Virus record (IMG/VR): IMGVR_UViG_3300033153_007973
Location: 1-64,000 of that record
Reading direction: 5' to 3' (one strand)
Length of the DNA: 64,000 nucleotides
Both the position numbers and the translations under genes were made by a program. The notes beneath the pieces were generated by a model. The model worked only from the letters and a program-made list of their open reading frames with translations. It had not been told where the DNA came from and did no database searches. Position 1 is the stretch's first letter. Each line of letters begins with the position of its first letter. This document shows, one piece after another, positions 608-59,997 of this stretch.

Positions 608-3600
608 TTACTTCGACGTATCCGACATCACCATTGTGTTGCTTCTTGAAGCCATTTGAAGGAAGAGACTTACAATGCTCCCGTCATCACCTTGAGCCGC
701 TGCTCGATGGAGACTTATAACTCCTCCGCTCATTATGGAATGAGCAACTGGTGTTGTCCTTGCGCATATTACGCTGACGCCGGACTGCCACTTACCACCT
801 TTAAACATGCTTTCGACCACCTTCTGCGCGGTCTCTGGCAGGCGCACGAGCTTTGAGAGCTCGTCCTGCAGTTCCTGTCTTGGGACTGCTTCCAGTGACC
901 TTAGCATATTTGTTACTATATCTAGAGTAGCCTTTTGCCCTTCACTATTCTTACTGTTTAGAGCAGGCTGTGCGAGTGAATGGTAGAGATCATTTGCATA
1001 TGTAATCCCTACTCTACCATGATCTTGCACCATGATATTTCGCATGATATTACCAATGTTACCGGCATTTGCAGCACCTTCTTTCATAAATCTGAACTCG
1101 GCTGCTGCAGCTGCCTGACCTTTAACTATGTGCTCAATGCTGACTCTTCCCTTCATATACCTGTTGAAGTCAGCATTTTTCTCTTTGCTATATCTGTCGC
1201 GGATATCTCTCCAGTTTTCGCTGGTACCAGTGGACATTGAAAACCGAAAGTCTACTTTCCGCTTCATGAGATTTTCGCGGGGAGAGATTTTGAGCCCCTT
1301 TAAGGCTTTGGAACAAGAAAGCATGTTGAAATACTTGGCGATCCAGATTTTGCTCAAGTCTGCTTTTGCCTTTGCTCCTAATGGAGCATATGCAATCATT
1401 GTATCGCCATCAAAGTCACCATCGAAAACAGTAACTAATGCTGGATTGAAGCGAATTGTGTTTCCCTTCCATACTAGCATTCTCATGCCTGCTACGTTGT
1501 TTACCTGATGTGCCGGATTTCGGCTGATTAGGCATCTTGCCTTTTGGCGTTTCAGGATAGAATTAATGGATCCTGTTGTTAGGTCCATCCAGTCATCTTC
1601 CGGAATCATATAGGATTTTCGGAAATCGGCAGATGCACACCATTTCTTAAATAGCCGAATTGGAATCTCGCATGTTGTCATGTCTAGTTGTGGATTACCC
1701 GATATTACTGCATGGCAGCTTCTGATAACTCTTGGAAATGCCAGCATTCGGATTATACCTGTCTTCCTGAACAGACGCTTTGCGATACCATTCATTACCA
1801 TGTTGAACATTTGATTTGAGCGAGTTATCATACTTCGCTCTATCCATGGATTGTCATATCCTCCAGCTTTGTGCTTTTCGAAGTTCTGGAAGTATACGAG
1901 CAATGTGTTCAATGCGTTCTGAACATCCGAAACTGTGAAACTTCCATTATTGAGCATATGGGCTTTTAGCGTTTTCGGTACTCTGATGTACATTTCGCCA
2001 TCCGAGCACACATATACATCTTCGGTTTTCACTTTATCTCGGCCCATTCGTGCATTTCGCTCAAATTGGGTTGGGTCATATGATGGTACATTTATCGATC
2101 TTGCGAATGCACCTAAAATTAACTTCATGTCTTTTGGAACTCGAACATAGCCATTTGACTTTAGAAGCCGTGGATCTAGAACTGTTCTCTCACGTAGTTC
2201 TGATTCCACGATATCAGTTTCAGCTGTAAGTGCTGTTCGGTCGATTGCTGTATCGATCACAATCCCATCCATTTGCGATTTCGGCACCAAGAAGCCATTT
2301 CTGGATTTCTTAATAAATCCGCCTTCTAGTGTAAATCCGAAACATTGCATATGATCGATTGTCGCCTCTTCCGCTTGCGTTTTGCGTACTTCGAGGACTA
2401 TCTCTTTTATGAGCTCATCCGCATTAACAGAGTATAAGCTAAACATAACATCAGCAAGAGTATACATACCTTTACCGCGGGGAGCGACTCCTCTATAGTC
2501 CATTAGGACATCCCTGCTGGCCTTAGCCTTTGATTCGGCATGTTGTTCAAGTCGAAAGTATCTAACCCAACCATAGCCCACGTTTTCATACCAGCTACCA
2601 TTTGTCCAGTCTACAACTAGTGCTTCTCGAGGTAGTTTAACTTCTTTGAGTTTCTTCGTAGCATCTTTGAATGAAATGTCATTTGCCAAAAGGGGCATTT
2701 TGCCTTGTGTTGTCTTTCGGGCATATATGCTATACATTTCTTCAAGAATTCGACTCGGACAGCACCTTTTTCCGACATATGGTGGAACGATGATATCTAC
2801 TGGTTGATCATTTATCTTTGGCATATCTTTTCTTGGCAGGATTTTTGCCACAATAACCTTGTTGCCATGATGATCTGCCAGTTTGTCACCGATTGATAAT
2901 CTTAAGGGATAACTCGATTCAACTTGTATATACTTTACGTTTTCATCGGAGTCGTCTCCATTCTCGATTCTTATGTCCGTCACGATAGCTGTTCTCTGTA
3001 GAGATGATCGCATAGGTCCGGCTTTGCATTTCCCGAGGTGTCCTCTGTTTACATATGCATCTAGAGTGTTCACCGCGGAGCGGAACTTCTGGATCATCTC
3101 TGCAGGATTGATTCGCAGAGGTTGTACCGCCAATTCTGCATCTCTGGCTTTGAAGATATCATAGTGTTTGACAATTGTTATGAATTCTTCAGATGCTTCT
3201 TTCGAAATGACACAGCCATCTTCATGAGTATATCCATAATACTCCATTCTTGCTGCCAGAAGATTTCGACCATGGGGTCGGAATTCTGGCTCATCATTCA
3301 TGTCTGCTTCTGGATTTAACATGAGAGGAGGCTCATCGTAGAGTAACTCACATGCTTGTGTTGTATATCTGGCCACGACTTGTCTGTTCGGCGAGATATG
3401 TCGATGAAATGGGTTGTGAGCAAAGATCCAGCTTACTGGGTACTTACCATATGCAATGACATCTCCATCGCTAGTGATTTTGGTTCCCAAACTCAGGTGT
3501 ACTATCTCACCTGCTTTTCCGCTCTGTTGGGTATCACTCATGACAAGATATTCGTTATTGTAAATCTTTTCTGGAGCTCCAAATGGAAGCACAACCTTGC

Positions 3601-4234
3601 CTGCTACATCTCTAGCTTTTAGACGGCTAGGAATATACTCCATTCTGAGCGAGTTTTCGTTGGATACTATTCTTTGAAGCATACCCTGACTGATATTCTC
3701 ACATGCAAACTGATACAGCTTGGAGACTACTTTCTCGTATATCAGGGTATTCTTCCTTACGAGGCGCCATCGGGCAGCATTGTAGCACGATGGTAACGTA
3801 GTTGCGATAACTTTCTTGAATTCACTGAAGTTCAGATACCTGCTCTCTGGTATCCATCCGAAGGTTTGTTTAAACCTGGCTAATTCAGCATCACTGAATA
3901 CCGCACGTTGCAGTATTCTCTCGGTAGCTGTTCCATCGAACGTAGAAGCACGATGATGCTCATGTGGAATATGAAGCATCTTCTTTTCCCAGTTGTACTT
4001 AAGAAATTGTGTAATGGATACTTCTTGGTCATGTGTGATGCATACTGGTGATAACATTACATAATACGGTGGGATCATTCGGTCGTAGTCACGTGCCACG
4101 ACTCTCGCCTTCTTCTCTCCGCGCTTGGTGTTCGCAGTGATGTCGATTTTCATTTCGCCATCTTCGAATAATACACTTAGTTGCGCAGAAGCTCCCGTGG
4201 CGAATTCAACGTGCAGGTCGTTGAAACTCGTCAT
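608..4234 (-). CDS. Single-chain DNA-directed RNA polymerase (fused, minimal beta + beta' like)
   Basis: Beta motifs in order: PFHRH..NRQVVA..TQA, GRNL..YYGYTHEDGCVIS, IGDKLADHHGNKVIVAKILPRKDMP..VDII, YFRLEQHAESK. Then beta' motifs: KTGIIR..PRVIRSCHAVIS, LISRNPAH, catalytic FDGDFDGDTM. Confidence 0.93.
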   Translation of the reverse strand: MTSFNDLHVEFATGASAQLSVLFEDGEMKIDITANTKRGEKKARVVARDYDRMIPPYYVMLSPVCITHDQEVSITQFLKYNWEKKMLHIPHEHHRASTFDGTATERILQRAVFSDAELARFKQTFGWIPESRYLNFSEFKKVIATTLPSCYNAARWRLVRKNTLIYEKVVSKLYQFACENISQGMLQRIVSNENSLRMEYIPSRLKARDVAGKVVLPFGAPEKIYNNEYLVMSDTQQSGKAGEIVHLSLGTKITSDGDVIAYGKYPVSWIFAHNPFHRHISPNRQVVARYTTQACELLYDEPPLMLNPEADMNDEPEFRPHGRNLLAARMEYYGYTHEDGCVISKEASEEFITIVKHYDIFKARDAELAVQPLRINPAEMIQKFRSAVNTLDAYVNRGHLGKCKAGPMRSSLQRTAIVTDIRIENGDDSDENVKYIQVESSYPLRLSIGDKLADHHGNKVIVAKILPRKDMPKINDQPVDIIVPPYVGKRCCPSRILEEMYSIYARKTTQGKMPLLANDISFKDATKKLKEVKLPREALVVDWTNGSWYENVGYGWVRYFRLEQHAESKAKASRDVLMDYRGVAPRGKGMYTLADVMFSLYSVNADELIKEIVLEVRKTQAEEATIDHMQCFGFTLEGGFIKKSRNGFLVPKSQMDGIVIDTAIDRTALTAETDIVESELRERTVLDPRLLKSNGYVRVPKDMKLILGAFARSINVPSYDPTQFERNARMGRDKVKTEDVYVCSDGEMYIRVPKTLKAHMLNNGSFTVSDVQNALNTLLVYFQNFEKHKAGGYDNPWIERSMITRSNQMFNMVMNGIAKRLFRKTGIIRMLAFPRVIRSCHAVISGNPQLDMTTCEIPIRLFKKWCASADFRKSYMIPEDDWMDLTTGSINSILKRQKARCLISRNPAHQVNNVAGMRMLVWKGNTIRFNPALVTVFDGDFDGDTMIAYAPLGAKAKADLSKIWIAKYFNMLSCSKALKGLKISPRENLMKRKVDFRFSMSTGTSENWRDIRDRYSKEKNADFNRYMKGRVSIEHIVKGQAAAAAEFRFMKEGAANAGNIGNIMRNIMVQDHGRVGITYANDLYHSLAQPALNSKNSEGQKATLDIVTNMLRSLEAVPRQELQDELSKLVRLPETAQKVVESMFKGGKWQSGVSVICARTTPVAHSIMSGGVISLHRAAAQGDDGSIVSLFLQMASRSNTMVMSDTSK

Positions 4235-12039: not shown

Positions 12040-12774
12040 TTAGTTATAAGGATGGAATGGCAGCTGTTCTTTAAAGTCATTGTATCTAACTCTGCTGACA
12101 ATCGTTCCTATTTGTTCTTCTGTTACTCGAGTATTACGAGATAATGGTTGACTATCGTATACATATTTGAGAATGGCATCCATCTCAGCATAAGTCATTC
12201 CGATGTCACCTTCATCTGTCTGATCCTTCCATAGTTCAGCAGTTGCTGGTCTATCGATAATCTCTTCAGGTACTTTGAGAATTTTCGCCATCTCATATAC
12301 GTCTGTTTTGTAGACATTCCAGAGAGGAGCAATATCTTCTGCACCATCACCATGAAGAGTATAGTATCCTAGCATTCTCTCGGTCTTATTGCTTGTACCG
12401 AGTACGATTGATTGATGGGCTTTAGCCTGATCATATAGACAAATCATGCGCACTCTGGCCATGATGTTGCCTTTACGTATTAAACTGAGATCTGTATTAA
12501 GGTCTGCACATGCATTTACTGCATGTGAGATAGGTATGGTCATGTGATTTACATGCATCTGTTCTGCGAGGCGACCTGCAATAGTGGTTGATGATGTACG
12601 AGTATACGGTAAGCTGTATGTTCGTACACAGTCATATCCTATGGCCTTCACTGCCAACATAAGACAGACCGCTGAGTCCAAGCCTCCGGAGAGACCCAGA
12701 ACCACTCCTTGCATGTCTCCTACTTTTTCTACGATAAACTTTGTGAGTTCATCTATCTTATATTCTATATTCAT
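12040..12774 (-). CDS. nadE: NH3-dependent NAD+ synthetase
   Basis: VVLGLSGGLDSA, GNIMARVRM, VLGTSNKTE..LGYYTLHGDG, PATAELW..QTDE. The ORF-track start overlaps a tRNA; true start likely 12774. Confidence 0.93.
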   Translation of the reverse strand: MNIEYKIDELTKFIVEKVGDMQGVVLGLSGGLDSAVCLMLAVKAIGYDCVRTYSLPYTRTSSTTIAGRLAEQMHVNHMTIPISHAVNACADLNTDLSLIRKGNIMARVRMICLYDQAKAHQSIVLGTSNKTERMLGYYTLHGDGAEDIAPLWNVYKTDVYEMAKILKVPEEIIDRPATAELWKDQTDEGDIGMTYAEMDAILKYVYDSQPLSRNTRVTEEQIGTIVSRVRYNDFKEQLPFHPYN

Positions 12775-12794
12775 CTCATATCCTCCCAGATATG

Positions 12795-12866
12795 CAGCCG
12801 GTGTTGGAATCGAACCAAACGTTCTCAGGATCAAAACCTGATGTCCTACCATTGAACGAACCGGCT
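12795..12866 (-). tRNA. tRNA-Gln(TTG)
   Basis: AGCCGGT/ACCGGCT acceptor, TCAGG-TTTTGAT-CCTGA anticodon arm, TTCGATT T loop. Confidence 0.9.
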
Positions 12867-14594: not shown

Positions 14595-14668
14595 TTGACC
14601 CGGCGAGATTCGAACTCGCGACATTCAGATTAGGAATCTGATACTCTATCCAGCTGAGCTACGAGTCA
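14595..14668 (-). tRNA. tRNA-Arg(CCT)
   Basis: TAGCTCAGCTGGATAGAG D arm; TCAGA-TTCCTAA-TCTGA; TTCGAAT. Confidence 0.92.
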
Positions 14669-14895: not shown

Positions 14896-15435
14896 TCATT
14901 GCTGGCCATCCCTTCTTCCGTGAATAATATGGCTGATATATGATGTTGTGCATTTGTATTTGCGTGCAATTTCTTGTCCTTCAATGCCTGCTCTCCAGAG
15001 ACGTTTTACTTCTCGTCTCATTTTCTTGCGAGACTTTCTTCTGGCAGCATTGATTTTACGTACACGGGTTTTCTTATCGACAGCTGTCTTGATTCGATCA
15101 GCTACATCATTACTATGATTTCTAGATGCATCAATTACTGCAAGCATTTGTTTAATGTCTCTTTGTCTGTGTATTCCCATATAAGGGTATAGCTTAGCTA
15201 AGAGATTCTCAATTTCGTATCGCTTATGAAGACCCCACATATATGCTGTACCATGTACGCGAGGGCGGTTCTTAATTGGATGTACTGTACCGCCGGCGAT
15301 TCCCTTTATCTTGTACATGATATCTCGTTTGTATGATGTGGTGCGGAGTTGAGTAATATTACTATATTTCTGTATGATAAAGGATCCTCGACTCTCAAAG
15401 AACCCAGCTAACCATTTTAAATCACCTATCTTCAT
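14896..15435 (-). CDS. LAGLIDADG-like homing endonuclease with C-terminal HTH
   Basis: LKWLAGFFESRGSF (degenerate LAGLIDADG), LYPYM, EIARKYKCTTSYISHI. Confidence 0.65.
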   Translation of the reverse strand: MKIGDLKWLAGFFESRGSFIIQKYSNITQLRTTSYKRDIMYKIKGIAGGTVHPIKNRPRVHGTAYMWGLHKRYEIENLLAKLYPYMGIHRQRDIKQMLAVIDASRNHSNDVADRIKTAVDKKTRVRKINAARRKSRKKMRREVKRLWRAGIEGQEIARKYKCTTSYISHIIHGRRDGQQ

Positions 15436-15685: not shown

Positions 15686-15706
15686 CTGGCGTGACAGGAA
15701 TCGAAC
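15686..15706 (-). pseudogene. tRNA 3'-end remnant
   Basis: GTTCGATTCCTGTCACGCCAG: T loop, 3' T stem and acceptor strand only. Confidence 0.45.
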
Positions 15707-15718
15707 GTGTTAGTAATA

Positions 15719-16362: not shown

Positions 16363-16390
16363 TGCGGGTCTGAGAGGATTCGAATCCCTC
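16363..16390 (-). pseudogene. tRNA 3'-half remnant (Trp-like acceptor strand)
   Basis: GAGGGATTCGAATCCTCTCAGACCCGCA. Confidence 0.5.
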
Positions 16391-16408
16391 ATACTCTTTT
16401 CTGTTTAT

Positions 16409-18300: not shown

Positions 18301-18831
18301 CTATATGATTTTCTTGTTGAAGAACTTGTATGCTTCTTGGTGTCGCCATTTGCTGATGGCCTTATAATACTCTTGTCGTCCTTTATGAGTGATAATTGTT
18401 ACCGGATACTTCTTGATCTTGTTCTCGCACCACAGTAAGAGCAAGCGACCGGTTCGGCCATTTCCATCCACAAATGGATGTGTTACTTCGAATGCATAGT
18501 GTACATTCATGCAGTCAATTGGCTTCTTTACTTCGTTGGCTGCCTTCACTACTCTCTCCAGCATACCAAGAATCTTGGTAGGAGGCGGACAGCTAAAGCC
18601 TCCTACTCTAACAGCAACAGGTCTGATAAGTCCTGTATAATGAGGAGGTAAGATCCCTTTCATCATGGTCTTATGCCAGTTAAGGATGTCCTGAATTATC
18701 AGGTTTTTCTTGGTTGTCAATGCTTTTGCTGCAGCTTTTAAGTGTTGGTCGAACTCCGGTGTTCCTGGATCCTCAAAGATGTCCTCGATAGCATTTGACT
18801 CACTAACTAGTTCTTCTATTCTGTTTTCCAC
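18301..18831 (-). CDS. Fic-domain protein
   Basis: HPFVDGNGRTGR canonical motif; ESNAIE. Confidence 0.93.
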   Translation of the reverse strand: MENRIEELVSESNAIEDIFEDPGTPEFDQHLKAAAKALTTKKNLIIQDILNWHKTMMKGILPPHYTGLIRPVAVRVGGFSCPPPTKILGMLERVVKAANEVKKPIDCMNVHYAFEVTHPFVDGNGRTGRLLLLWCENKIKKYPVTIITHKGRQEYYKAISKWRHQEAYKFFNKKII

Positions 18832-19196: not shown

Positions 19197-19268
19197 TCGG
19201 GGTGAGAGGGATCGAACCTCCGATCTCTGCGTCCCAAACGCAGCGCCCTACCGCTAGGCTACACCCCG
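19197..19268 (-). tRNA. tRNA-Pro(TGG); its 5' end contains the HNH stop codon
   Basis: CGGGGTG/CACCCCG; CTGCG-TTTGGGA-CGCAG; TTCGATC. Confidence 0.92.
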
Positions 19269-19753
19269 TTTTTCATGTAGTGCTCTTCTGCATGACAGTT
19301 TCTGCAGAGCACTTCTAAATTTCTCAATCTGTTATCCTTTCTGTTTCTGTTCTTATGATGTACTTCTAATGCTGATACACACTTCTTATATGAGCATTTG
19401 CTGCATTCCTTCCCATAGTGGTCGAATGCTTTCTGTCGATAACCCCCACTATCTTCACGGTAGTTTGGGTGTTTCTTTCCAAAGTACAATGTATTTCTAT
19501 GAGCATTCGAACAAGATCTACCGCAGAAGCTCTTGCCGCTTTTAGATCTCTTCAGTTGACTTGGTTTGGCATAGAATTCTTTGCTGCACCAAGCACACTT
19601 AACTTCTTTTCCTTTCAGCCTGGATGCTTTAATACATTCTTTGGAGCAATAGTTCTTGTGTCCAAGCCATTGATTTTGTTGATGATACTTAATGTATTTC
19701 TCATAGGTCTTGCCACATTGTGCACATTTGACGGTTACATTTTTATGTCTCAT
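19259..19753 (-). CDS. HNH homing endonuclease with Zn-finger repeats
   Basis: CAQC..YCSKEC, CAWC..FCGRSC, LEVHHKNRNRKDNRLRNLEVLCRNCHAEEH. Confidence 0.9.
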   Translation of the reverse strand: MRHKNVTVKCAQCGKTYEKYIKYHQQNQWLGHKNYCSKECIKASRLKGKEVKCAWCSKEFYAKPSQLKRSKSGKSFCGRSCSNAHRNTLYFGKKHPNYREDSGGYRQKAFDHYGKECSKCSYKKCVSALEVHHKNRNRKDNRLRNLEVLCRNCHAEEHYMKNGV

Positions 19754-19759
19754 GTACCT

Positions 19760-19788
19760 ATTGTATCATGATATCTGCTTTCCGTCAA
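19760..19788 (-). promoter_or_regulatory. sigma70-type promoter giving a probably leaderless HNH mRNA
   Basis: TTGACG-17-TACAAT with TG extension; ATG follows 6 nt after the -10 box and has no SD. Confidence 0.75.
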
Positions 19789-19791
19789 CCA

Positions 19792-19832
19792 TCCCAAAGC
19801 AGGCGTCCTAGACCAGGCTAGACCATCTCCCG
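19792..19832 (-). pseudogene. 5' half of tRNA-Pro(TGG), truncated at the anticodon loop
   Basis: CGGGAGA-TG-GTCTAGCCTGGTCTAGGAC-G-CCTGC-TTTGGGA, then the HNH promoter. Confidence 0.8.
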
Positions 19833-23959: not shown

Positions 23960-24079
23960 ATGATTAACTGTGCCGAGTGTCGTTGGCAGACAACGCTCAT
24001 CAGGGTTTGTTCGCTGCCGCGACCCTGACCATCATAATACAACCAATCTGTCGTATATACGAGAGACACAGTTAATCAT
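23960..24079 (-). ncRNA. Candidate structured RNA between tmRNA and tRNA-Asn
   Basis: 13-bp terminal stem ATGATTAACTGTG/CACAGTTAATCAT enclosing three hairpins. Confidence 0.5.
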
Positions 24080-24081
24080 TT

Positions 24082-24457
24082 TGGACCCGGCGGCATCGAA
24101 GCCGCGTCCGCGATCTTTTCCCCTCAGAAAGTTTACTACCATTGGGAGCGAGCAAGCTCGCACGTTCCACCATCCCTTATTTAGCGACTAGGGAAGTCGT
24201 AACGAGTCCCTTTCGGGAGTAACTCCCTTCAGTGCGTGCCTCCCCGGGTACAGAAGGGTACTCTTGCCGGTTCAGCCCTGCACTCTTAAGCGCAGGCAAC
24301 GTTCTGGTTCATGGAACCGAAGTTCCCGACCAGAATCGTGTCGTTGGCGTTAGTTTCGTCAACTTTGGTTTGAATCCTCAGTTTTATGACTTAAGCATTC
24401 TTAGGTCAGGTAGCTTTCTTTGTTTACTAGAACCGCGTCGAAACCAATTTCGGGCCC
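24082..24457 (-). ncRNA. ssrA: tmRNA
   Basis: 5' GGGCCCGAAATTGGTTTCGAC and 3' GACGCGGCTTCGATGCCGCCGGGTCCA; G3-U acceptor wobble; tag ORF 24348-24286 reads ANDTILVGNFGSMNQNVACA*. Confidence 0.92.
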
Positions 24458-30983: not shown

Positions 30984-30984
30984 T

Positions 30985-31026
30985 TGCCGGGGTGGGAGTC
31001 GAACCCACCTGGTGATCCAATCCGGC
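30985..31026 (-). ncRNA. tRNA minihelix-like element (acceptor + T arm only)
   Basis: GCCGG-ATTGGATCACCAG-GTGGG-TTCGACT-CCCAC-CCCGGC-A. Confidence 0.55.
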
Positions 31027-59936: not shown

Positions 59937-59997
59937 TGGCCCATGTGGGGACTCGAACCCCAATGCACATACCACGTGCACCTGCCTAGCATGGGCC
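59937..59997 (-). ncRNA. D-armless tRNA-like RNA
   Basis: GGCCCATG/CATGGGCC-A acceptor; TGCAC-GTGGTAT-GTGCA; TGGGG-TTCGAGT-CCCCA. Confidence 0.6.

Follow-up and report, generated by a model that had tools for sequence, protein, structure and literature searches.

Free-standing homing endonuclease genes have been described within phage tRNA gene clusters, and the closest known system to the one we describe here is SegB of phage T4, a GIY-YIG enzyme that recognises a conserved tRNA-gene motif and cuts tRNA genes of phages that lack it, with homing carrying the flanking tRNA genes along (PMC2330249). The segB stop codon lies at the processing site of the downstream tRNA-Arg, and this was proposed to limit expression. 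HNH-family site-specific nucleases are also encoded among phage tRNA genes (2004, as cited in PMC2330249), and mobile elements carrying an integrase can insert into tRNA genes and restore them, as at the Caldiarchaeum tRNA-Thr locus, where a displaced tRNA fragment remains beside an intact gene with the same anticodon (PMC3293823). Our literature searches found SegB and the T5 enzymes, but nothing describing a split tRNA gene with a carried replacement. The locus examined here, in a giant phage, combines a broken tRNA-Pro gene, an HNH endonuclease gene and an intact tRNA-Pro gene, and comparison with other genomes supports, without experimental demonstration, the view that the nuclease gene entered the phage's earlier tRNA-Pro gene and brought a complete tRNA-Pro with it. 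The analysis began from a window of 64,000 nucleotides (positions 1 to 64,000 of IMG/VR record IMGVR_UViG_3300033153_007973), part of a 234-kb genome, and its relevant features, of which those at tRNA-Pro lie where the first-pass annotation had placed them, are as follows.

19832-19792, minus strand: remnant 5' half of an older tRNA-Pro(TGG) gene, positions 1-38, truncated right after the anticodon loop.
19788-19760, minus strand: sigma-70-like promoter site TTGACG-17-TACAAT with a TG extension, starting 3 nt after the old anticodon loop.
19753-19259, minus strand: HNH endonuclease gene of 164 aa, with its last three codons and stop inside the following tRNA.
19268-19197, minus strand: intact, divergent tRNA-Pro(TGG), the only tRNA-Pro in the 234-kb genome.
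17615-17577, minus strand: remnant 5' half of an older tRNA-Trp(CCA), in a companion case.
17572-16969, minus strand: companion cassette, with an intact tRNA-Trp(CCA) at 17572-17500, TTGACA-17-TATAAT at 17498-17470, and an HNH_3 + HTH endonuclease gene at 17451-16969.
16969-16940, minus strand: 3' part of the older tRNA-Trp, T arm plus acceptor strand TGGGCCC.

The old 5' half reads CGGGAGA TG GTCT AGCCTGGTCTA GGAC G CCTGC TTTGGGA, corresponding to the acceptor strand, U8, a 4-bp D stem, the 5' strand of the anticodon stem, and a 7-nt loop with anticodon TGG; the next five nucleotides (TGGTT) do not pair with CCTGC, so the tRNA sequence stops after position 38. A full-length tRNA covariance model does not detect 5' halves, and we therefore built separate 5'-half and 3'-part models. 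The generic 5'-half model gives the Pro half only 11.2 bits (E=1.6 in the window), although a profile built from 11 foreign tRNA-Pro(TGG) genes hits 19831-19790 at E=0.0018, over profile positions 2-41, which is the best hit in the window outside true tRNAs. A pattern-based scan for halves gave as many hits on shuffled as on real sequence, and nhmmer versions of the half models, although specific at 6 bits or more (5 and 10 hits on reversed sequence), miss about half of true tRNAs, including the Pro halves in the window and in contig L009, described below. The promoter-like site scores 10 of 12 matches, and because its -10 box ends 6 nt before the HNH ATG, a leaderless mRNA is predicted. The intact tRNA is called by ARAGORN and by Rfam (67.2 bits), and its own acceptor (7 of 7) and anticodon stem (5 of 5) pair. 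The ORF ends AAC GGG GTG TAG and shares exactly 10 nt with the tRNA, such that the stop codon occupies tRNA positions 8-10; there is no room for a separate tRNA promoter, and co-transcription with the HNH gene is inferred. The GC content of the cassette is not distinctive (15th percentile).

The companion case at tRNA-Trp is also real, with the 5' half scoring 21.4 bits (E=0.002) and the 3' part 29.1 bits (E=2.5e-5), and the acceptor strand of the latter pairs 7 of 7 with the GGGTCTA of the 5' half, 620 nt away. The closest homologue of its nuclease (51% identity, in locus L229; such numbers denote loci and contigs compared here) also has a tRNA-Trp 45 nt upstream. The first-pass annotation had regarded the two cases as repeats of the same architecture, but the layouts differ in that the tRNA precedes the nuclease in the Trp unit and follows it in the Pro unit, and the Pro locus lacks the old 3' part.

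The 164-aa protein matches PHROG 1271 (HNH endonuclease) at E=3e-18, and has matches to Pfam HNH_3 (24.2 bits against a cut-off of 24.8), HNH (19.2 against 21.4), and zf-FCS. Residues C117, C120, H132, H133, N137, N145, C150, C153, H154 and H158, which include the catalytic His...Asn...His and two CxxC zinc pairs, are invariant across 38 homologues. The protein has two N-terminal zinc-ribbon modules plus a C-terminal zinc-bound HNH domain, the latter, in an AlphaFold2 model (mean pLDDT 92.6), matching the CBASS Cap5 HNH domain (prob 0.98-0.99), T4 endonuclease VII (0.89) and the Gme HNH nickase 4h9d (0.80-0.89), although all E-values are above 0.09 because the matches cover one small domain only. 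Sequence searches against solved structures gave only weak hits, to the McrA and IscB HNH domains and a MYM zinc finger. At the DNA level only the tRNA matched known phages, and a protein search of the phage collection gave four weak hits, including a crAss-like 'intron-encoded HNH'.

Contig L009, which is unrelated to the window, encodes the closest HNH homologue (56% identity) in a different genomic context. The unit is collinear from the old half to the tRNA end, with an equivalent TTGACC-17-TATACT at the same place and an HNH-tRNA junction conserved to the base. L009 also retains the old 3' part, and the old 5' half (123-161) and old 3' part (757-786) bracket the HNH gene and the new tRNA, with acceptor strands (CGGGTGC/GCACCCG) that are exact complements. 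Promoter-like sites at the cassette edge also occur in L140, L005 and the Trp unit. The stop codon sits at tRNA positions 8-10 in the window, L009, L097, L152 and cyanophage S-CAM3 (all Pro), L119 (Ala) and L107 (Leu), and the tRNA is retained with the overlapping ORF across the window, L009, L097 and L152. We note that only the CxxCH..EH motif aligns when the S-CAM3 and window HNH proteins are compared by BLASTP, and S-CAM3 is thus a distant or convergent case. The new tRNA-Pro 5' halves are 75-80% identical to each other and 66-71% identical to old halves, whereas the old halves are 63% identical to each other. Several HNH-linked tRNA-Ala genes share an unusual D arm that the old halves lack. 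A GCG/CGC motif next to the anticodon loop of carried tRNA-Pro genes is only suggestive, as it is present in the window, L009 and S-CAM3 but not in L097 and L152.

These observations bear on an alternative in which the mobile unit is only the old fragment, the promoter and the HNH gene, having landed immediately upstream of a resident tRNA-Pro, with the 5' half a hitch-hiking homology arm from a former host genome. From the window alone the intact tRNA could indeed be the resident gene, since no old 3' part lies downstream of it; many family members (L097, L152, and those in Patescibacteria) sit directly upstream of a tRNA with no remnants, and the HNH-linked tRNA-Pro of S-CAM3 resembles tRNA-Pro genes of other cyanophages that have no HNH. 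However, in L009 the intact tRNA lies between the two complementary halves of the broken gene and is thus inside the insertion, and the same holds for L010, L015, L021, L033, L140 and L003-Asp. Together with the conserved HNH-tRNA junction and the greater resemblance of the new tRNAs to each other than to the old halves, this makes the alternative unlikely, although it is the strongest of those we considered.

The HNH family is closely associated with tRNA genes. A tRNA lies within 100 nt in 14 of 17 close IMG/VR and assembly loci and in 56 of 69 metagenome loci, against 1 of 47 for distant HNHs. The HNH tree contains a Ser clade (100/100 support), a His clade (100/99), an Ala-rich clade (98/96) and a pair consisting of the window and L009 (100/98), and the tRNA labels require 28 changes on the tree against a shuffled mean of 57.2 (0 of 200 shuffles as low). 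In cellular genomes the family is found almost only in Patescibacteria, just upstream of tRNA-His or tRNA-Ser. Most HNH-tRNA pairs, above all in Patescibacteria, show no detectable remnant of an older gene, and the cognate anticodon-loop 7-mer occurs upstream in only 5 of 69 units, against 3 on the antisense strand, so remnants are not a general feature of the family. This tight linkage without remnants would be compatible with a toxin-like role, in which the HNH protein attacks tRNA molecules or host tRNA genes and the linked tRNA is a resistant antidote within an addiction or host-takeover module, and some His-Me nucleases may cut RNA. We consider this very unlikely, both because the broken genes record DNA-level insertion at a fixed place in the target gene and because the fold matches are to DNases.

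Further split genes with complementary acceptor strands were identified. Those in L010, L033 (Ala), L140 (His) and L003 (Asp, Phe) pair 7 of 7 when scored computationally, and those in L015 and L021 (Ala) and L008 (His) were paired by reading the sequences. The old 5' parts end at tRNA positions 38-44 in all 12 mapped cases. In 12 of 14 split-tRNA cases the broken half and the adjacent intact tRNA share an anticodon, whereas label shuffles give a mean of 2.9 and none of 200,000 shuffles reached 12; the two split cases with no matching tRNA beside the nuclease are L003 Phe and L231 Val. The split cases were found by searching from the nuclease, and the Ala cases share nuclease ancestry, so they are not fully independent. 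This notwithstanding, the survey called for by the first-pass annotation, which had proposed tRNA-replacing homing elements with the nuclease physically tied to a rescue tRNA, came out in favour of that proposal. Ordinary turnover of a phage tRNA array could also be considered, with illegitimate recombination and decay leaving tRNA fragments everywhere and endonuclease genes merely accumulating in non-essential regions. The genome does hold several orphan tRNA-like 3' elements far from any HNH (30984-31013, 59937-59994, 16365-16394 and 15686-15715 in the window, and 64547-64665 and 70392-70416 outside it), and nuclease genes are known to gather in phage tRNA clusters (PMC2330249). However, the matched anticodons, the complementary halves that bracket the nuclease, the confined breakpoints, the tRNA-type specificity of nuclease clades, and the junction conserved to the base in unrelated contigs make a coincidental Pro arrangement highly improbable.

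The position of the break, exactly at the anticodon loop where tRNA introns and anticodon nucleases act, raises the question of whether the interrupted tRNA is still functional, either through an intron (group I, or protein-spliced) or through deliberate expression of the 5' half as one part of a split tRNA or as a decoy for host anticodon nucleases. The half lies downstream of other genes on the same strand and could be transcribed. However, no intron family was found at E<=1 across 12000-35000, the old half would pair with the 3' half of the downstream tRNA at only 4 of 7 acceptor and 1 of 5 anticodon-stem positions, and no matching old 3' half was found in the window. In the other cases positions ~39-48 are missing. 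An intact tRNA-Pro also makes a split one of the Nanoarchaeum type unnecessary. We regard a functional interrupted tRNA as the least likely of the alternatives, although without expression data.

We favor, with reasonable confidence, a model in which the locus is a free-standing homing-endonuclease cassette, composed of a promoter-like site, an HNH endonuclease gene and a complete tRNA-Pro(TGG) gene, that inserted into the phage's earlier tRNA-Pro gene at the 3' edge of the anticodon loop. Cleavage, immunity and mobility are inferred, and no cassette-free relative was found: an exact 33-nt old-half pattern gave no hits in IMG/VR, a 23-nt pattern gave none in GTDB genomes, and the HNH and the upstream 99-aa protein, as single-sequence queries in IMG/VR, found no relatives. 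In this model the nuclease, using its zinc-ribbon modules, recognises the anticodon-arm and variable-loop region of a cassette-free tRNA-Pro gene in a co-infecting genome and nicks or cuts it, and recombinational repair copies the cassette from the donor, with conserved tRNA sequence, including the retained old halves, serving as homology. The resident gene is destroyed, but decoding would be kept because the cassette brings a divergent tRNA-Pro that the nuclease does not cut. The 10-nt overlap and inferred shared transcript would keep nuclease and tRNA together, and RNase P processing at the tRNA 5' end may remove the nuclease's stop codon and so limit its expression.

A broader possibility, which we put forward only tentatively and as somewhat less likely than not, is that these are members of a widespread and so far undescribed class of 'tRNA-swap' homing elements, with endonuclease lineages each specialised on the anticodon arm of one tRNA type and each carrying a nuclease-resistant replacement tRNA, often of unusual shape. 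Such elements would move between jumbo phages, other phages and Patescibacteria, driving horizontal replacement of tRNA genes, and may also deliver tRNAs that escape host tRNA-cutting defences. If tRNA genes in phages and ultra-small bacteria can be overwritten by selfish cassettes that bring their own copy of the gene they destroy, this would explain the tRNA fragments that litter phage tRNA arrays, why some phage tRNAs look odd, and how tRNA genes move between unrelated genomes. It would also offer a set of natural nucleases, each apparently aimed at a different 10-20 bp tRNA-gene site, with specificity that can be read from context, making target prediction for HNH enzymes directly testable. 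There is also relevance to current work on phage tRNAs as counter-defence, because the carried tRNAs differ from the resident ones in the anticodon stem and D arm.

The relationship to SegB is close in that both are free-standing nuclease genes in phage tRNA clusters, but SegB belongs to another nuclease family, recognises the T-psi-C motif shared by many tRNAs with relaxed specificity, cuts at 3' ends, and lies between tRNA genes rather than inside one. No broken target gene and no same-anticodon replacement gene have been described for SegB, whereas here the clades are specific for one tRNA type, the breakpoints are in the anticodon arm, and the replacement tRNA overlaps the ORF. The integrase-borne elements such as that at the Caldiarchaeum tRNA-Thr locus use a recombinase and an identical att repeat that covers part of the tRNA, whereas in the Pro unit the only ORF is the HNH gene, the fragment and the intact gene are only about 71-73% identical, and a whole tRNA gene is carried. 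Endonuclease-bearing group I introns in bacterial and phage tRNA anticodon loops share the insertion point and may encode a homing endonuclease, but here no intron RNA was detected, the flanks cannot re-form a tRNA, and in our model function is kept by gene replacement and not by splicing. Finally, intron-less homing with co-conversion, and the splitting of genes by endonuclease insertion, in T4-like phages (SegF, SegG, MobE; PMC2988022) appear similar in that a free-standing nuclease gene spreads by double-strand-break repair and replaces neighbouring recipient sequence with a resistant donor allele, or splits a gene, but those targets are probably protein-coding genes, and the resistant allele there seems to be the donor's version of the same locus, not a second complete copy lying inside the broken target.

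The 234,008-bp virus record has direct terminal repeats and is rated complete, and it carries 31 tRNA genes in two clusters, only one of which is a tRNA-Pro. The elements of the tRNA-Pro locus all lie on the minus strand, and are arranged as follows:

19832-19792 (-), tRNA-Pro(TGG) 5' half, positions 1 to 38
19788-19760 (-), promoter-like site TTGACG-17-TACAAT with a TG extension
19753-19259 (-), open reading frame encoding a 164-aa HNH endonuclease
19268-19197 (-), intact tRNA-Pro(TGG)

The 5' half reads CGGGAGA-TG-GTCT-AGCCTGGTCTA-GGAC-G-CCTGC-TTTGGGA, with a 4-bp D stem and anticodon TGG, and because the next bases (TGGTT) do not complement CCTGC, the tRNA sequence ends after the anticodon loop. 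The promoter-like site found by a promoter scan begins three bases later. The open reading frame ends AAC GGG GTG TAG, and the intact tRNA-Pro(TGG) is placed by both ARAGORN and Rfam, such that ten bases are shared between them and the stop codon is tRNA positions 8-10. The fragment is scored at only 11.2 bits (E=1.6) by a generic 5'-half covariance model, although a profile of 11 foreign tRNA-Pro(TGG) genes finds it at E=0.0018, the best non-tRNA hit in the window. The arrangement reported in the first-pass annotation is confirmed. Other features of this region include a Rfam tmRNA match at 24079-24457 (-) with 49.4 bits (gathering score 47), such that the phage appears to encode a tmRNA, although ARAGORN did not call it, and a Fic/DOC-family protein (18301-18831 (-), E=1e-15) and an NAD synthase (12040-12852 (-), E=2e-63) encoded among the tRNA genes.

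The 164-aa protein matches PHROG 1271 'HNH endonuclease' at E=3e-18, whereas Pfam HNH_3 and HNH fall just under their cut-offs; a zf-FCS zinc finger is also hit. Across 38 homologues the residues C117, C120, H132, H133, N137, N145, C150, C153, H154 and H158 are invariant, as are the cysteines of the N-terminal zinc ribbons. An AlphaFold2 model (mean pLDDT 92.6) has a C-terminal domain that matches DNase-type HNH domains (CBASS Cap5, T4 endonuclease VII, and the Gme nickase), and N-terminal modules that match the DotN zinc ribbon. The nuclease of the companion split tRNA-Trp locus in the window has a different build, with HNH_3 at the N-terminus and a helix-turn-helix at the C-terminus, and the two nucleases are therefore independent. 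A third endonuclease-like ORF (14896-15435 (-); a weak Pfam LAGLIDADG_1 match, and PHROG 5046 'HNH endonuclease' at E=4e-10), also with a C-terminal helix-turn-helix, lies just upstream of tRNA-Arg(CCT) (14595-14668 (-)).

No intron family is found in 12000-35000 at E<=1, and the old 5' half could pair with the 3' half of the intact tRNA at only 4 of 7 positions in the acceptor stem and 1 of 5 in the anticodon stem, whereas the intact gene pairs 7 of 7 and 5 of 5 with itself. Intron, split-tRNA and decoy models fail these pairing and Rfam tests, or lack any data.

The decisive comparison is with the closest homologue of the nuclease (56% identity), which lies between tRNA-Ser genes on an unrelated 1.4-kb contig (L009) that reads in order:

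123-161, tRNA-Pro 5' half, CGGGTGC...TTTGGGA
after 4 nt, TTGACC-17-TATACT
212-688, HNH gene ending CAC GGA GGG TAG
679-753, intact tRNA-Pro(TGG) with the same 10-nt overlap
757-786, 3 nt later, variable-loop-plus-T-arm segment with acceptor strand GCACCCG

The acceptor strand GCACCCG is the exact complement of CGGGTGC, so the promoter, nuclease and tRNA sit inside one broken older tRNA-Pro gene. The window and L009 are collinear from the old half to the end of the new tRNA. The same stop-in-tRNA junction occurs at loci L097 and L152 (Pro), L119 (Ala) and L107 (Leu), and in cyanophage S-CAM3 (L001), where a distantly related or convergent HNH overlaps tRNA-Pro by 10 nt. We also note that S-CAM3 has an orphan tRNA 3' part (3648-3677 (-), 27.4 bits) inside an annotated hypothetical CDS near this unit, and a TTTGGGAC octamer just upstream of the HNH that is identical to the tRNA-Pro anticodon loop. 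An alternative model is that the intact tRNA is resident and that only the fragment and nuclease arrived. The window alone cannot exclude this, because the old 3' part is gone, but L009 and seven other bracketed cases argue against it.

Profile-guided scans for the nuclease family gave 80 IMG/VR loci, 80 metagenome loci and 52 loci from GTDB genomes. A tRNA lies within 100 nt of the nuclease gene in 14 of 17 close viral or assembly loci and in 56 of 69 metagenome loci, compared with 1 of 47 for the distant HNHs of small phages. The nuclease tree contains a Ser(TGA) clade (support 100/100; 11 of 12 members), a His(GTG) clade (100/99; 15 of 17), an Ala(TGC)-rich clade (98/96), and the Pro pair of the window and L009 (100/98); the tRNA labels need 28 changes on the tree, against a shuffled mean of 57.2, and none of 200 shuffles was as low. 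In cellular genomes (loci L177-L216, from GTDB) the family is found almost only in Patescibacteria genomes assembled from metagenomes (Saccharibacteria, Paceibacterota and related groups), where it sits directly upstream of tRNA-His(GTG) or tRNA-Ser(TGA) on the same strand, mostly without remnants of an older gene. Most members of the family show no remnants.

Orphan halves next to these nucleases were identified using separate covariance models for tRNA 5' halves and 3' parts, nhmmer versions of these, and direct reading. The split genes are tRNA-Pro (the window and L009), tRNA-His (L008, L140 and L106), tRNA-Ala (L010, L015, L021, L033 and L024) and tRNA-Phe (L003), together with three associated with other HNH families: tRNA-Trp in the window, tRNA-Asp in L003, and tRNA-Val in L231. 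Where both halves survive their acceptor strands pair, and for Ala they include the G3:U70 pair. The pairing is 7 of 7 by script count in the five non-window cases where the scan found both halves (L003-Phe, L010, L033, L140), and L003-Asp is an exact complement by reading. L003 is a 231-kb phage contig with two adjacent split tRNAs (2262-2896 (-) and 2906-3517 (-)), a tRNA-Asp broken by an HNH of another family plus a new tRNA-Asp, and a tRNA-Phe broken by an HNH of the present family with no new tRNA-Phe inside. In the Ala group the nuclease is antisense to the tRNAs, but the order is the same: old 5' half, nuclease, new tRNA, old 3' part. L021 additionally contains (3417-3494 (-)) a tRNA 3' part followed directly by a 5' half (anticodon TAA) whose acceptor strand pairs with it 7 of 7, a permuted order, as if a tRNA gene had been circularly rearranged.

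The half and the adjacent intact tRNA share an anticodon in 12 of 14 split cases (two lack a matching tRNA beside the nuclease), and we note that the cases were found by starting from the nuclease. Label shuffles give a mean of 2.9 and never reached 12 in 200,000 trials, and a deliberately generous binomial bound is 4.5e-4. The old 5' parts end between tRNA positions 38 and 44 in all 12 mapped cases. Plain decay of a tRNA array is made unlikely by the anticodon matches, the paired halves and the fixed breakpoints. The genome does nonetheless contain orphan tRNA-like 3' elements (T arm plus acceptor strand), none of which is beside an HNH gene:

30984-31013 (-), in the window, also with a 5' acceptor strand
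59937-59994 (-), in the window, also with a 5' acceptor strand
16365-16394 (-), in the window
15686-15715 (-), in the window
64547-64571 (+), outside the window
64641-64665 (+), outside the window
70392-70416 (+), outside the window

The 5' acceptor strand in the first two gives a minihelix or a tRNA-like shape without a D arm, and several of the elements are followed within 1-15 nt by an ATG; they could be decayed tRNA genes or tRNA-like RNA-processing signals.

The new tRNA-Pro 5' halves of the window, L009 and S-CAM3 are 75-80% identical to each other and 66-71% identical to the old halves, whereas the two old halves are 63% identical to each other. These three share GCG/CGC next to the anticodon loop, which 11 unlinked tRNA-Pro genes lack, although L097 and L152 do not have it. 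Several HNH-linked tRNA-Ala(TGC) genes (L005, L008, L019, L021, L024, L033 and L091) share an unusual D arm (GGGACTGC...GGGGTGGTC; GG at positions 8-9, GACT...GGTC stem) that none of the five old Ala halves has, the older, broken Ala genes beside them being canonical; the one in L024 also has a non-canonical T loop and is missed by ARAGORN. These patterns fit tRNAs that travel with the nuclease, but do not prove it.

The anatomy, the bracketed arrangement, the type-specific linkage and the fixed breakpoints are clear, and the interpretation in the first-pass annotation, that these are tRNA-replacing homing elements, is supported by independent loci. In the absence of enzyme data, expression data or a cassette-free relative, the mechanism is inferred. 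We infer that the enzyme recognizes the anticodon arm and variable-loop region of a cassette-free tRNA gene of its own type and nicks or cuts there, and that repair copies the cassette from the donor with conserved tRNA sequence (and the retained halves) serving as homology. The carried tRNA is inferred not to be a substrate and to keep decoding intact, with the overlap and the shared promoter keeping the pair together. A toxin-antidote model in which the nuclease attacks tRNA is not excluded, but the broken genes record events at the DNA level. The -10 box ends 6 nt before the ATG (19753-19760 (-)) with no ribosome-binding site, so this copy may be translated from a leaderless mRNA, whereas L009 keeps a 17-nt leader with GGAGG. 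RNase P cleavage at the tRNA 5' end would remove the stop codon, and the same idea was proposed for T4 segB and tRNA-Arg (PMC2330249).

We found no description of this arrangement in the literature searched, which did not include most subscription journals. T4 SegB is the nearest characterized system, in that it is a free-standing nuclease in a tRNA cluster, it recognizes a tRNA-gene motif, its homing carries flanking tRNA genes, and its stop codon lies at a tRNA processing site (PMC2330249). The elements described here appear to be a variant of free-standing endonuclease homing that differs from SegB in the nuclease family, the specificity for one tRNA type, the insertion inside the target at the anticodon arm, and the presence of a complete replacement gene with the same anticodon. 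Integrase-borne elements in tRNA genes leave a similar footprint of fragment plus intact gene (PMC3293823), but they work through a recombinase and identical repeats.
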